Of a DNA stretch of 64,000 bases, positions 32,486 through 59,232 are shown piece by piece (position 1 is the first letter of the stretch; the number at the start of each line of letters is the position of its first letter). Source of the stretch: Podarcis tiliguerta. Taxonomy: Eukaryota. The stretch lies in the NCBI GenBank assembly GCA_965153285.1, contig OZ229110.1, one strand, 5' to 3'. Position numbers and translations under genes: made by a program. The notes beneath the pieces were generated by a model. It was given only the letters and a program-made list of their open reading frames with translations. It searched no databases and was not told the origin of the DNA.

Positions 32486-32679
32486 TTAGATATCATCCTC
32501 TGTCACCAGGCAGTAGAAATCTGTCCTTGCTCCATAGTTCCGAGATCCCAAATCAGAGATGTCAATCTCACTCCTTTGGTTTTCCCCAAGCTGTATTTCT
32601 TCCAAAGCACCAAGTGGAGGACCATCAGGGCCACTCATGGGAGGAGGCGGTGCGCCTTTGAAAATGGACCCCCTGCCAC
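32486..32679 (-). CDS. SIGIRR: SIGIRR last coding exon (C-terminal tail ...[27 protein letters not shown])
   Basis: Hand translation of the minus strand matches the SIGIRR tail motif [20 protein letters not shown]; tacag| acceptor, TAA at 32488-32486. Confidence 0.95.
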
Positions 32680-35560: not shown

Positions 35561-35735
35561 CAGAGTCTCCTTCAGGGTGCGAATCCCCCCGGAAATCCAA
35601 GTAATTGCTGTTGAGGATCAGCATAGGGTCCTTGTCTTCCTGGAAACTGGTCTGGGGGTCTCCCCTGAGGCCTTGATAGGACACTTTTCGTGGCAGGGCG
35701 AGGCACAGTTCCTTCCAAAAATCAGATGAAGGCGC
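35561..35735 (-). CDS. SIGIRR: SIGIRR exon (TIR box 3 and start of tail: [18 protein letters not shown]...EDKDPMLIL)
   Basis: Hand translation; ctag| acceptor, TG|gtaaca donor; 175 nt, phase 0 to 1. Confidence 0.95.
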
Positions 35736-40240: not shown

Positions 40241-40391
40241 CATGGATCCAGCGCGCCACATCAGAAGGGTCACTGTGCTCTTCTGCTGCTTCAGCAAGTT
40301 TATGGCTGGATGTGCTATTTCTCGGTACTGGCTCTCAAAGACAATGAAGATTGGCCTCCGGGATAGTTCCAGCAGCCTCCAAAGACCTTCC
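40241..40391 (-). CDS. SIGIRR: SIGIRR TIR exon ([50 protein letters not shown])
   Basis: Hand translation; tgcag| acceptor, ATG|gtaagt donor; 151 nt. Confidence 0.95.
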
Positions 40392-40972: not shown

Positions 40973-41075
40973 CTGAAATTATTGTTGCACCATTCCTGTT
41001 CCAGATATGCATTAGAGAGAACCACAATGAGGCGGCGGCACCGGCTGACATTCATAATCAGATCTGCAGAAGGTT
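40973..41075 (-). CDS. SIGIRR: SIGIRR TIR exon ([35 protein letters not shown])
   Basis: Hand translation; ttcag| acceptor, CAG|gtaatt donor; 103 nt. Confidence 0.95.
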
Positions 41076-42887: not shown

Positions 42888-43028
42888 CATTGATCTCCAC
42901 TTCTCCATGACGGTTTCTGTACCAGAGGAGCACATTCAGACGGCACTTCACATACATCACAGCCATTAGTAACAGCAGTGCCACAGTGAAAAGTGCAGCT
43001 AGCACAGCGCCCAAGTGCCCAGCAGTCT
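42888..43028 (-). CDS. SIGIRR: SIGIRR transmembrane exon (GHLGAVLAALFTVALLLLMAVMYVKCRLNVLLWY...GEVEIN)
   Basis: ORF 42826-43188; hydrophobic helix followed by YVKCRLNVLLWY; CAGCAG tandem acceptor (start 43031 or 43028); ATG|gtaaat donor. Confidence 0.95.
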
Positions 43029-44480
43029 CTGCTGTAATAGAAAGACATATTTTAAATAGCATTAAATGAGAAAACAGCCTTATAATTGATAGCATGGTAG
43101 AGAAAAGAGGAAGAGAAGAGTTGGGTTCTATGGTCTCCGAATATACCAAATTATAAAGAAAATGAGGGGTTATGTCATTCTTGAACAATTTTTAGTATCT
43201 TGATGACTGTTCTGACTATCAGAATGTGCAACCATGATGAGGAAGAGATGAGCAGAAGCTAAAAGACAGATTTATTCTGGTATCACATTGTTAGATCACC
43301 CTCCAAATTTTGCAAGTATCTCCTTTCACAAGATGCACATGCAGAAGTAAATCAAAGGTTTTCAGAGTAAAGATGTGCATGAACTAAATTATTCACATTC
43401 TCCAGTGCCAATTCAATTTCTTCCTGCAAGTGCGCGGGCATGTTCATTTAGACTTTTTGTAAAACACTCTGGAATACACTGTTAACTGAGCCATTTGCTG
43501 AATGTTGCTTTAAAATACACTGAGGCTCCAATCTCAGAATTGCTCCATCAGCCTATGGAAACTTCCAGATGGAGGAATTTGAAAGTGTTCAAGCATGCCA
43601 AAACAGCTGAGTTGCTTGGGGGGCAGCCTAGTAGCACGTTTGCTTTGGTGTGCAGAACCATTTGAGGCTGTGACTGATTGAAAACCTCAGAAAAGTTTCT
43701 ATTGTCTGCTGGTGCCATCATGTGGCAATTTTCTGCCATCAGATTCACTGATGACGCCATCATAAAATTGCTCTTGTAAACTGAGCCCCTAAAGCCTGCA
43801 TGGAGCAATACTGAGGGCACTAAAGGCTGTCTTTATATTAAACTCCTCTAGAGACATGGTAAGTCTGGTTCAAAGCCCTTTTTAGCAACCCTGCTACCAG
43901 TTAGAGCAAAAACATATTCTAAAATCTAAGAAGAGGATCAGGTAGGCTCAGCCGAGTTTCTTGAATTCCAAGATAAAACAGGGGAAACTTATTCAAAAAA
44001 AAAGGAAGGCATCTAGATACAGCATAAAAGCAAATACTCTTATCACCCCAGCTAGACTTCAGTCTATCAGATGGCCATGCATGGGCTAAAGTAAATTACT
44101 CTGTTTTTTAAATGAGAACAGTTAGTTTCTATACAGAAAATTAAGTCTTGCTTCTTCCTTAAAGAAGGAAAGCCAAGCTGAGATACCCAGTTCATAAATT
44201 CTCAGAGGGTCATACAATACTTTAGAATTTTGAACTAAGCCATCTTAGTTCAAAACTATGTTTCTTCCCCCCAAAAACACATTTGCCTTTGCAAACATGC
44301 CAAGAGTGATCTGAACAGTGGCACTACAAAGTGAAAAATGTGGACTGAATTATAAACTGAATGTATAGTGAAGCTGTCACACCTCTATAAACTCATTGTG
44401 GGTCAAACTCTGACCAGATTCTATGATACCCATATCCTCAATAGACCATACTGAATCCTGTACATTGGACCTAAGGATGT

Positions 44481-44790
44481 CATAGAATCATAGAATCATA
44501 GAGTTGGAAGAGACCACAAGGGCCATCGAGTCCAACCCCCTGCCAAGCAGGAAACACCATCAGAGCACTCCTGACATATGGTTGTCAAGCCTCTGCTTAA
44601 AGACCTCCAAAGAAGGAGACTCCACCACACTCCTTGGCAGCAAATTCCACTGTCGAACAGCTCTTACTGTCAGGAAGTTCTTCTTAAAGTTTAGGTGGAA
44701 TCTTCTTTCTTGTAGTTTGGATCTATTGCTCTGTGTCCGCTTCCCTGGAGCAGCAGAAAACAACCTTTCTCCCTCCTCTGTGTGACATCC
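44481..44790 (-). mobile_element. CR1 LINE 3' fragment
   Basis: (CATAGAAT)n, the reverse of the CR1 ATTCTATG tail; ORF 44560-44763 KNFLTVRAVRQWNLLPRSVVESPSLEVFKQRLD is a typical CR1 RT C-terminus. Confidence 0.92.
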
Positions 44791-44809
44791 ATATATTTGA
44801 ACAAGTTTC

Positions 44810-44813
<4 letters not shown>

Positions 44814-44842
<29 letters not shown>
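44814..44842 (+). repeat. (AC)n microsatellite
   Basis: Direct observation. Confidence 0.95.
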
Positions 44843-44845
<3 letters not shown>

Positions 44846-45586
44846 CCATTCCAAAGCACACACATAATGTGTGAAATGGCCCTTAGCATCTCACATACAC
44901 CAATGGAGAAATGAAATAATGATGCTGAGCCATGGATCATTTCTAGACTGTAATTAGAAAATGTAATCCAAAACACTTAGGCTACTTGAGTCTCAAGAGG
45001 AGGCAGACAGAATATAAATCACATTCAATTCCTCAGCTGCTGCACAATCTCAGATTTATCTAGTTCTGCCATTTTAATGACAAATGTACAAAGCAAATGC
45101 AAGCTCAGTTATCACACTTGCCCCTCCCATCATGCTTCAGATAAGAAGCCCTTCTAAAGATAATTAAATTAAAAAGAGTTTAAAGTATTGCATTCATGTT
45201 TATTTGTCATCTTGTTAACCAAAGTGCAGAACTGCTCTGGGGTGGGGTCAAAGATTTGTGTGTAAGAGAGAGACACTTCAAAGGCATCAGCCAATCAATG
45301 CTGCACACAGCCATATTCTTATCTATTGGTTTTCAGAGGTCAACTCTGAAACGGAAATTTACATTTGGATTGAATGCCATAAGTGTGTTTTCAGAGTAGT
45401 CTGACAACTCTTAAAAAAAAAAAGTATCTCCAACTCTCATTTCAGAAATACTAATGGGAATTCTACTATGGAATACAGTTAGTGAGTAGAAGAATCTTTT
45501 TTGAACAACTTAATAAAGATAAGCTTCAAATAAGGTACTGGGCCCACACCCAAATGCACATGGTATGAAGTACAAAGAAATGCTAC

Positions 45587-45717
45587 CTGATTTTTGCAGT
45601 GTGAAAACTGCTGTACTGTTTCTAACCCAGCAGGCAAATGCTCCATAATTTTCATCTGTTGTTATATTCATATCCAAAGTGCTGGAGATGAATATCTCTG
45701 ATTTATTGTCATTGAAC
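45587..45717 (-). CDS. SIGIRR: SIGIRR membrane-proximal Ig domain, second half (FNDNKSEIFISSTL...YGAFACWVRNS...)
   Basis: ORF 45510-45728; matches the SIGIRR YGAFTC motif; 131 nt, phase 2 to 1. Confidence 0.93.
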
Positions 45718-46722: not shown

Positions 46723-46912
46723 CAATGAGTAGAAGCAGCATAGGTCTCGTTGTCAAGCAACTGGTCATCTTTCATCCAATGGAGGCCAAAATCACAGCTT
46801 TTCTTGTAGGGCAGCTGCACAGTGCAGTTCAGTGTAAACTGGCTTCCCAAATCACGTTGCAAAGTCAGGTTGCTGGAGGGGTAAAGGAAACGAGGAAGGA
46901 CACTGCAAATAT
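46723..46912 (-). CDS. SIGIRR: SIGIRR membrane-proximal Ig domain, first half (DICSVLPRFLYPS...LGSQFTLNCTV...HWMKD)
   Basis: Hand translation aligns with SIGIRR VCDRAPDFLSPS..LGSSVALNCT..QWLKD; caacag| acceptor, TG|gtaaga donor; 190 nt. Confidence 0.93.
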
Positions 46913-48893: not shown

Positions 48894-49241
48894 CTGCCAT
48901 GACCAGCCGGACAGTGAAGGAGCTGTTTCTCTGATCGTTCAAGTAGAGCGTGCAGGTATAGTTGCCTGCATCGCTGGCATTTGCGTGCTCAAAGGTGAGG
49001 TATGTTGTTGTGTTCTGCAGTGTGCTGTGCAGGTGGCTTAACGCGGTGAAGTTAAGCAGATGACAGTTTTTGCTCCACTGGATGCTAAAGTTTGAGGTAG
49101 ACTGAAGAAGCTGGAGGCTCTGGTTATCCAAAGGGCAGAACAAATGATTAACCTGTTCTTGCTGGGTCCAAATGGTGTGATCATAGAAGTGATCTGGGTC
49201 CACACACGATAAATTAGATGAAACCGTCAGCGAAAAGAATT
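48894..49241 (-). CDS. SIGIRR: Extra N-terminal Ig-domain exon (IL-1R domain-2-like) of the SIGIRR locus
   Basis: Open 348-nt phase 1-1 exon (tttag|AA ... GCAG|gtgagt) with C..CP..QWSKNC..DAGNYTC..FTVRL Ig pattern; in frame with the next exon. Confidence 0.85.
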
Positions 49242-52650: not shown

Positions 52651-52708
52651 CAAACATGTCTGACCAGCAAAACAGAAGAAGCACACACATAAGAAAAGCT
52701 AATTTCAT
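52651..52708 (-). CDS. SIGIRR: Candidate signal-peptide exon (MKLAFLMCVLLLFCWSDMF)
   Basis: MK followed by a hydrophobic core and polar end; in-frame stop just upstream; ends phase 1 at G|gcaagt (GC donor), matching the phase-1 acceptor at 49241; possible upstream acceptor cttctcacag| with exon start 52931. Confidence 0.65.
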
Positions 52709-56870: not shown

Positions 56871-59232
56871 CAACCCTATTTAAGCATACGACTTAAGAGA
56901 TGCAGGTTGTGTCCCCATTGTCAATCGATGGAAATGGAAATGTTAGCATCCTTACCTTTGTAGTAGGATGTGTTATGAAAGAGTACTTCATCTCTGTACT
57001 AACAAAGCTATTTTACCAATACATAGGGATAGCAAGTTAAATCTAGAAGGAGCACAGTAGAGTTTCTTCATCGTGCACTGCCTGATCATTTTGTGAGCCA
57101 CATCAAAAATAAATCATAAGGAAGTAAAAATCTTGTATGCAGATATCTGTGACACTCCAGAGATAAATCTGCTCACTTCCTAGAATGACAGTTCAACTAT
57201 TTATTTATATGGTCATTTGAAAGCACTAATTATGGGAATAAATGTGTCAGTTCCATGTATGGCTAACCTAGTGTTTCATTGCTCCACCACATACTAAATT
57301 TAAGCCCATTGTATCCAGCTGTGGCACAAACATCACAGTGGCAAAGGCAGAATGAGTCTATGGCACTTCTGGACTAGAAGCTGAGGATTTATAGGCCCGA
57401 CTAAGGCAAAATCAAATGTATATTCTTGCCTGTCTCTTCAGCACTGCAATGACACCTACTCCTAAGATTAGAAGACTAGAGCGAAAGCCACTAGTAGCCT
57501 AACACACACAGGTTTGCACAGGTACTGTAATGCAATATAGAGTAGCACACTCACATATTTTGAAGATCCCTACAAGTTGGCCACTACTAATTAATTTCTT
57601 TTTAAAAAACAGTATTCCACTTCCTTCTACATATGTCCAAGGCAGCCAACAGTAATGCAAATGAAAAACAGAAAACAAATAAACACCATATAGCTGGTCA
57701 GCAAGTAAACTTAGGATTTGATCAGCCAATAGGATGACTATGTTGCTGTAGTAAGGCACCCCTTAGAATGCAACTGACTAGGCAGCATCCTGTGTTCCCA
57801 GAGAAGAATAGCCCATTTTTTCCTCCCAAGTTCCTGTATGCTTTGCCACTGGCTGCAGGGCCAGCATGGGCAGAGGCCAGAGTAAGACTGGATTGTATAG
57901 GTCAGAATAACAGTGTATGCACTATTCATTCTCTCCTAAAGCTCCATGCACCCCTACAGCAAATGTTAAGCAGAAGGCAAAGAGAATGATGGATAGACAA
58001 ATGTTGACTACTGAAAAGCCCTCACAGGACAGAAGCCAGCCATATCAAGCATCAGTGAGCTAATGTGAAGCCTACAGGAACCTGGCAATGTGTGTCATGG
58101 GAAAATGGAATTCAATGAGGCCTCAAGAACAAATGGAAAACATAGGACACCCCTATGATCAGATAGCAAGTGTTAAATACAAATGTGCGCACACACAAAT
58201 CTCACTGACCAAAAAACAACAATGGAAAAATAATCTCAAATTGGGAAGCAAGGCCTAGGAAAGCCCACTGTGCCAAACAGAAACAACAATGGAAATAGGC
58301 CTGCCATGTAAGAAGTTCCAATCTTCTCTCAAAATACTCATATTGTCTCATAAATAAAGTGTCTCTCTTCCAAAAAGAGATATCCAAACATAGAAGAGAG
58401 ATTAGTGGTTGAAGCACAAGTGACTGCAAAGGCAGGAGGCCTGATCAGGTCAAGCAAGAAGGGCACAGAGAAGAAAAAAACAGTGGGCCAGACTGCCTTA
58501 ATTGCTAAGCACCACTAGCCTACATATATTCATAAAACACACAGACCAACACCAGGAAAACTTTTTCTTTTCGTCTCACCTTGTAAAGCTGCTGTCCTTT
58601 CCTGCTCACTCCTTGTGGCAAGGCAGAAAGCCAAGAGCACAGATGGCACAGGCAGAAGAGAGAGCAATTTCACAGTCATTTTAGCTTATTCACAAGCAGC
58701 ATCCTACAAAATGGAAAAGCACAGGGGAAATAATTACCTTTATGGACTTCCCTCTTTGAGATTCAGGCAGCCACCTTCAAATCCTGAGACTCCTTGTGTG
58801 TCCTTGCTGTGCACTCCCTGATCGTAGCCATCTTAATCACATGACTGGCCAACAGACTGGCTTTGCCAGTTAAGTATCTCCCTCTGCTTTTTTTTTTGTT
58901 GTTGTTCATTCCATGTCCTCCTTAAATGACTTGTTCTATTCTCCACCCCCAATCACAATCTTCCAGGCCTGCACTCGGGACAGCCAGTTCCTCCCACCTG
59001 CTATCATTGCTCCACCCACCTTTCCACCTGCATACAAGGAGAAAATGAAACCTGGACTCTTAAAATCAACAAACCCACCCAGCGTGTTGGCAGCAAAACA
59101 GCCGACCAAGAGTTTGCTCAGTAAAGAGCCAGGAGGCAGGTTGCTCAAAAGCTCTGCAGCTGTGAGGATTGCCGCTCTGTGGCACTAAGCCAGCCGGTTA
59201 TCCTGGATCCTGGCAAAGACTGCTGTGGACTA

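Follow-up and report, generated by a model that had tools for sequence, protein, structure and literature searches.

A D2-type immunoglobulin exon in the SIGIRR gene of the lizard Podarcis tiliguerta and the probable antiquity of the two-Ig receptor

The SIGIRR locus and its second coding exon

The window analysed here is a stretch of 64,000 nucleotides from the lizard Podarcis tiliguerta (assembly GCA_965153285.1, contig OZ229110.1). Its minus strand carries a lacertid ortholog of SIGIRR (IL-1R8), and the subject of this study is the 348-nt stretch 49241..48894 within this gene, which encodes an immunoglobulin (Ig) domain in addition to the usual one. We consider it highly probable that this stretch is coding exon 2 of the lacertid SIGIRR gene and that the resulting two-Ig form is ancestral in jawed vertebrates and under purifying selection.

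Read on the minus strand, 49241..48894 is free of stop codons and consists of 2 bases completing a codon, 115 full codons and 1 trailing base. It is preceded by a pyrimidine-rich tract with the acceptor AG at 49243-49242 and ends in the donor G/GTGAGT (the slash marks the exon border), with GT at 48893-48892. The junction 48894>46912 keeps the frame, and the exon beginning at 46912 is preceded by CAG. A preliminary description of this DNA had reported an intact phase 1-1 exon with good splice sites, a set of four-Cys motifs and a frame shared with the downstream SIGIRR Ig exons. The splice sites and the read-through were seen directly on the minus strand, and all named motifs (SCVDP, LFCPL, QWSKNC and DAGNYTC) are present in the exon peptide. 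In Pfam the peptide scores 29.7 bits with Ig_2 (curated cut-off 27) and 24.1 bits with I-set (curated cut-off 23.7). Its seven N-x-S/T sequons suggest that the domain may be heavily glycosylated.

At its start, exon 2 of lacertids has six to seven additional residues (EFFSLT...) compared with other squamates. An in-frame CCCAG/AT at ~49193 (minus strand) corresponds to Zootoca isoform X3, in which the first Cys is missing. At the acceptor position that the Lacerta agilis X3 and Zootoca X2 models imply, the window has GG instead of AG.

The ten coding exons were mapped by tblastn of the Lacerta agilis protein against the window, and their borders were set from the splice sites. In database comparisons the window exons were searched singly, with public lacertid proteins as stand-in for the full-length product. 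The features of the gene are as follows.

58580..58679, minus strand: coding exon 1, ATG at 58679, hydrophobic signal-peptide region of 33 amino acids, phase 1 end, GT donor
52651..52708, minus strand: putative upstream exon of the preliminary description, with ATG, hydrophobic stretch and G/GCAAGT (GC) donor
48894..49241, minus strand: coding exon 2, the D2-type Ig exon of SIGIRR, 348 nt, phase 1-1, four Cys, seven N-x-S/T sequons
48896..48901, minus strand: Met-Ala codons two codons before the end of exon 2 (Met at 48901-48899), start position of models of ~410 amino acids
46723..46912, minus strand: coding exon 3, N-terminal half of D3, the membrane-proximal Ig domain, from phase 1 to phase 2
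45587..45717, minus strand: coding exon 4, C-terminal half of D3, from phase 2 to phase 1
42888..43031, minus strand: coding exon 5, transmembrane helix and juxtamembrane segment
42557..42700, minus strand: coding exon 6, start of the TIR domain, with a Pfam TIR match
40973..41075, minus strand: coding exon 7, TIR box 2 with SIGIRR-type Cys
40241..40391, minus strand: coding exon 8, continuation of the TIR domain
35561..35735, minus strand: coding exon 9, last part of the TIR domain with the Ala-Leu site, and beginning of the C-terminal tail
32486..32679, minus strand: coding exon 10, SIGIRR C-terminal tail, coding to 32489, stop codon at 32488-32486

The gene extends over 26 kb in the window. 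Its exact exon lengths total 1677 nt or 559 codons, which replaces the earlier estimate of a ~544-amino-acid product. Compared with lacertid models named SIGIRR, the window exons are ~93-97% identical (in tblastn alignments that overrun the exon ends); among the listed species none is identical at every exon, Podarcis being nearest.

The preliminary description had joined exon 2 to 52708..52651 through the junction 52651>49241, but the lacertid RefSeq models use 58580>49241 instead. As a first coding exon followed by a GC-AG intron, 52708..52651 would give a product of 545 amino acids; it has an ATG followed by a hydrophobic stretch, its G/GCAAGT is like known GC donors and it is in phase with exon 2. 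However, it is absent from 14 of 14 lacertid models, while 58679..58580 is 100% conserved with them: tblastn aligned it with 33/33 amino acids identical to the N-terminus of the Lacerta agilis X1 and Podarcis models. The latter exon ends in phase 1 with the canonical donor CAAG/GTGAGA, and homologous signal peptides occur in Anolis, Python, geckos and crocodilians. We therefore regard a start of the protein at 52708..52651 as very improbable, and this segment probably lies outside the gene.

Tail to tail with SIGIRR, a plakophilin-family gene lies on the plus strand from 8701 to ~22300 (reaching at least ~22 kb). It encodes a head domain and Arm repeats, with plakophilin 1 as best PDB match (E 5e-11), and is presumably PKP3. 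The SIGIRR locus of chicken and human is likewise reported to have this tail-to-tail order (PMC4090809). At ~44720-44860, within the intron that separates exons 4 and 5, several overlapping open reading frames (ORFs) read as Cys-Val repeats, a sequence that suggests a (GT)n-type microsatellite.

An Ig domain of IL-1 receptor D2 type

The ectodomains of IL-1RAcP, IL1RAPL1 and IL-1R1 contain three Ig domains, the second and third of which (D2-D3) align colinearly with the two Ig domains of the lizard protein. An alignment profile searched against the PDB gave single colinear matches to these two domains in IL-1RAcP (113-319), ST2 (88-289) and IL-1R1 (135-301), and its TIR part matched the solved SIGIRR TIR with E 1e-81. 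A hidden Markov model (HMM) of the exon 2 domain scored 30 bits on D2 of an IL-1R-like protein, 10 bits on D1 of the same protein and at most 14 bits on SIGIRR's own D3. The assignment of the exon to the D2-type domains of the IL-1R family, made earlier from the motifs, is thus upheld by the four-Cys pattern together with the colinear profile match to D2-D3. The lizard protein differs from the three-Ig receptors in lacking D1, in a sequence identity of only 16-21% and in a TIR domain without the signalling residues.

The exon 2 peptide was modelled by AlphaFold as an Ig sandwich with a pLDDT (predicted local distance difference test) of 85.9; in a Foldseek search with this model, generic I-set domains rank first. 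A full-length fold of P0247, the Podarcis protein nearest to the lizard product in RefSeq, reached a mean pLDDT of 57 with a poorly modelled TIR domain, and only its ectodomain (pLDDT ~75-90) was used; it best matches D2-D3 of family members by a small margin. Taken together, the sequence data support that the exon 2 domain and D3 correspond to D2 and D3 of the IL-1 receptors, the structural part alone not being decisive.

Conservation and distribution of the two-Ig form

The exon peptide was run by HMMER against all 1.84 billion representative proteins and gave four relevant matches. These are a Logan ORF 100% identical to the exon peptide, an ORF of another lizard (74% identical), a 547-amino-acid sturgeon protein (53% identity) whose 90% cluster includes the GenBank entry "DIGIRR [Acipenser sinensis]", and a three-Ig IL-1R-like protein aligned over its second domain. 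In RefSeq, models named "single Ig IL-1-related receptor" contain D2 in more than 20 species and are 528-566 amino acids long, except for the N-terminally truncated model of Rhineura with 511. Among lacertids they comprise Lacerta agilis, Zootoca vivipara and three Podarcis species, with 97-100% identity to exon 2 of the window, and among other squamates Hemicordylus, Elgaria, Rhineura, Anolis, Sceloporus, Pogona, Varanus, Eublepharis, Sphaerodactylus, Python and Candoia. D2 is also present in all four crocodilians listed, two salamanders, three sharks, sturgeon, paddlefish and a teleost. Protein searches restricted to D2 returned no bird, turtle, frog or mammal protein with this domain, although these searches were word-limited and are weak evidence of absence. 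The D2 HMM likewise found no match in any bird model examined, the long ones included.

In every lacertid RefSeq set the long form is isoform X1 or the sole isoform. At the transcript level, it is represented by a 552-amino-acid double-Ig protein from a 2.8-kb Logan contig of the Pogona/Phrynocephalus cluster. Because the gene covers 26 kb in the window, this contig must be a spliced mRNA. It is the sole evidence of this kind and comes from agamids, a different lizard family from that of Podarcis.

Conservation was measured on protein sequences. In an alignment of 27 sequences from sharks to lizards the four Cys show no or almost no variation, and 17 positions of D2 are invariant; among double-Ig models the only Cys loss concerns the truncated Rhineura model, which lacks the first Cys. 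No stop is present in D2 of any listed squamate model, and lizard D2 is 47-54% identical to D2 of sharks and salamanders. For 23 non-redundant taxa the mean pairwise identity is 60% in D2, 53% in D3, 54% in the transmembrane region, 79% in the TIR domain and 65% in the tail. At the level of these sequences, the constraint on D2 is at least equal to that on D3, the Ig domain kept by every SIGIRR.

A D2 identity above that of D3 is not what is expected of a decaying relic, and the conservation of the four Cys and the similarity to sharks and salamanders largely refute the reading of the stretch as a pseudo-exon that is still open in this species by chance. Relics of the exon do exist in some lineages, as Logan transcripts of an archelosaur, probably a turtle, with signal peptide and D2 that are frameshifted after about two thirds of D2, and as turtle models that retain just the last D2 strand. 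The exon is, however, intact in the window and in all squamate, crocodilian, salamander and shark double-Ig models obtained, and we judge it most improbable that it is a relic in Podarcis. A more serious alternative is that the stretch serves chiefly as an alternative or leader exon, with a short, mammal-like single-Ig form, made from the Met at the exon end or by exon skipping, as the dominant lizard protein and the long form as a minor one. Skipping of a phase 1-1 exon preserves the frame, in a paddlefish model D3 follows the signal peptide immediately, and models of ~410 amino acids beginning with MAD... exist for Podarcis lilfordi, geckos, Python and colubroid snakes, some of the snake entries being derived from transcriptomes. 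On the other hand, the excess of D2 over D3 conservation across 23 taxa, the lack of stops in the listed squamate models, the rank of the long form in the lacertid RefSeq sets and the spliced agamid contig all speak for the long form, so that we consider this alternative unlikely in both of its variants.

Several points weigh against a dominant two-Ig receptor with an IL-1R-type ectodomain as we propose it. The RefSeq XP models that support the long form are computational predictions, and short models of 412 amino acids are present in lacertids too (Podarcis lilfordi), so that other products may accompany or outweigh the long form in lizards. In the structural comparison, D2 structures of the IL-1R family are the best matches but exceed generic Ig domains by just 1-2 Z units, and the interdomain root-mean-square deviation of the P0247 ectodomain is high. 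The binding role of D2 considered below is putative.

SIGIRR, DIGIRR and the origin of the single-Ig form

SIGIRR has been defined by Cys and Ala-Leu at two sites of the TIR domain and fish DIGIRR by Ser and Ala-Leu (PMC9448908). In the window, TIR box 2 reads SRCRRL, with Cys in place of the Ser of IL-1R1, and Ala-Leu replaces Arg-Tyr. With mammalian and avian SIGIRR (IL-1R8, TIR8) the lizard gene has in common the locus beside a plakophilin gene, tail to tail, as well as a D3-type Ig domain, a transmembrane segment, the Cys/Ala-Leu TIR domain and a long C-terminal tail; over the shared part, bird SIGIRR is 64-67% identical to the lizard protein. The lizard gene differs by adding a signal-peptide exon and a D2-type Ig domain of ~105 amino acids. 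Mammalian SIGIRR is described as single-Ig (PMC9020223, PMC3482685), but the gene in the window encodes two Ig domains. In a maximum-likelihood tree of 37 taxa, which follows the species tree (teleost, chondrosteans, sharks, salamanders, then tuatara, archelosaurs and squamates), the lizard protein groups with named SIGIRR proteins. The orthology proposed in the preliminary description is hence sustained by the SIGIRR-type TIR domain, the tree position and the plakophilin-family neighbour.

DIGIRR (Gu et al. 2011, as reviewed in PMC3705552, PMC9020223 and PMC9448908) is described as having the same chromosomal location as SIGIRR (PMC9020223), and in fish it is reported to be localised to Golgi and cytoplasm and to inhibit IL-1beta and lipopolysaccharide signalling (PMC3705552, PMC9448908). 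Like the lizard protein, it combines two Ig domains with a transmembrane segment and a TIR domain that does not signal. Lizard D2 has 54% identity with D2 of the sturgeon cluster containing the DIGIRR entry and 34% with a teleost D2. The two proteins differ in TIR box 2, where the sturgeon and teleost two-Ig proteins have Ser (SRSRRL) and the lizard has Cys. The earlier term "DIGIRR-like" is thus appropriate for the two-Ig ectodomain but not for the TIR domain; by TIR, tail, tree position and locus the lizard protein is SIGIRR, with an ectodomain of the DIGIRR type.

The Cys of SIGIRR type is also found in crocodilians, salamanders and sharks, the last with Leu-Leu instead of Ala-Leu at the second TIR site. 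Two Ig domains go together with Cys in sharks (P0005, P0123, P0128) but with Ser in P0144 and P0146 from sturgeon and teleost. Change in the TIR domain and loss of an Ig domain are therefore not coupled stages of a single "transition".

Short models from birds, turtles, geckos and snakes begin with MADLC, MEDLC or MAEFC and align with ...VMA/D at the end of exon 2 in the window. All colubroid snake models obtained start at the Met near this exon end, and two turtle models start slightly earlier, within the last D2 strand. Single-Ig proteins thus appear to start inside the old D2 exon, which would explain the missing signal peptide of the single-Ig form. The Logan ORFs P0014 and P0126 (128 amino acids, 98% identical to each other) contain a signal peptide spliced to a D2 with 68% identity to crocodilians, and go out of frame about two thirds of the way through D2. 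Together with P0127 they stem from Logan contigs of ~3 kb, and their sequence suggests that a turtle or bird may still transcribe a relic of the exon. The model P0117 of Polyodon spathula (436 amino acids) has its signal peptide joined straight to D3 and resembles a genuine product of exon skipping, single-Ig but with the signal peptide retained, a route unlike the truncation in birds and turtles. When the one-Ig or two-Ig state is mapped on the 37-taxon tree, at least five changes are counted, some of which may merely reflect which isoform was annotated.

The preliminary description had suggested that the single-Ig state may be a late, lineage-restricted reduction. The conservation of D2 in sharks, sturgeon, paddlefish, a teleost, salamanders, squamates and crocodilians and a gene tree that follows the species tree support a lineage-restricted reduction. 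Going further, we lean towards the view that the ancestral SIGIRR had a signal peptide, D2 and D3 and a TIR domain with Cys, that the DIGIRR architecture is accordingly the ancestral one, and that mammals, birds and turtles were truncated separately. This reading, which we favour with some reserve, draws on the sequences of sharks, salamanders, squamates and crocodilians, which retain both Ig domains and the TIR Cys. Birds and turtles have only short models, which begin at a conserved Met close to where the D2 exon ends, and the literature reports the same for mammals. The separate truncations may have arisen by translation start at this conserved Met in the last D2 strand. If true, such a start would explain why the mammalian protein has no signal peptide.

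In Podarcis, exon 2 would be joined upstream to the signal-peptide exon 58679..58580 and downstream to the exon pair that encodes the usual SIGIRR Ig domain. The product is predicted to be a type I membrane protein of 559 amino acids with signal peptide, D2, D3, transmembrane helix, a signalling-dead TIR domain and a long tail. IL-1RAcP contacts ligand:receptor pairs through D2 and D3, as seen in published ternary-complex structures. Since D2 has its best structural match in IL-1RAcP, we infer that D2 may add a docking surface like that of an accessory protein. The D2-D3 module would then dock on ligand-bound IL-1-family receptors in the manner of IL-1RAcP and bring in a TIR domain unable to signal, and the lizard protein would dampen IL-1R/TLR signalling, as do mammalian SIGIRR and fish DIGIRR.

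In the literature, DIGIRR is presented as a molecule of teleosts or fish (PMC3705552, PMC3482685, PMC7144542, PMC9020223), and reviews cast the two-Ig form as a teleost curiosity or "transitional" molecule (PMC3705552, PMC9020223). A survey of 400 species found SIGIRR-like proteins with mostly one Ig domain or none (PMC12108812), and a phylogenetic study saw no evidence of a shared IL-1R ancestry for SIGIRR (PMC5861070). No report of a two-Ig SIGIRR in tetrapods or sharks was found in the searchable literature, outside of which most subscription journals lie. The double-Ig receptor in an amniote that the preliminary description announced is borne out in its architecture but is not new to databases, as models of more than 20 species already include the exon. 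The exon and the long protein are thus already in public gene models; there is no novelty at the sequence level, while the evolutionary reading is new, and the value of the present analysis lies in this interpretation.

In conclusion, the two-Ig form occurs widely and shows strong conservation across sharks, fish other than teleosts, salamanders, squamates and crocodilians. This reorders the accepted story of the receptor, with a loss of the Ig domain that was late, repeated and independent of the TIR changes. If the ancestral state is as we propose, fish "DIGIRR" would not be a fish-specific transitional molecule, and the D2-D3 homology would tie SIGIRR to the IL-1R family, an ancestry questioned before (PMC5861070). 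SIGIRR/IL-1R8 is a studied checkpoint of IL-1, TLR and natural killer cell signalling whose name and models presuppose one Ig domain, and the receptors described here offer natural D2-containing forms for asking what the SIGIRR ectodomain binds.
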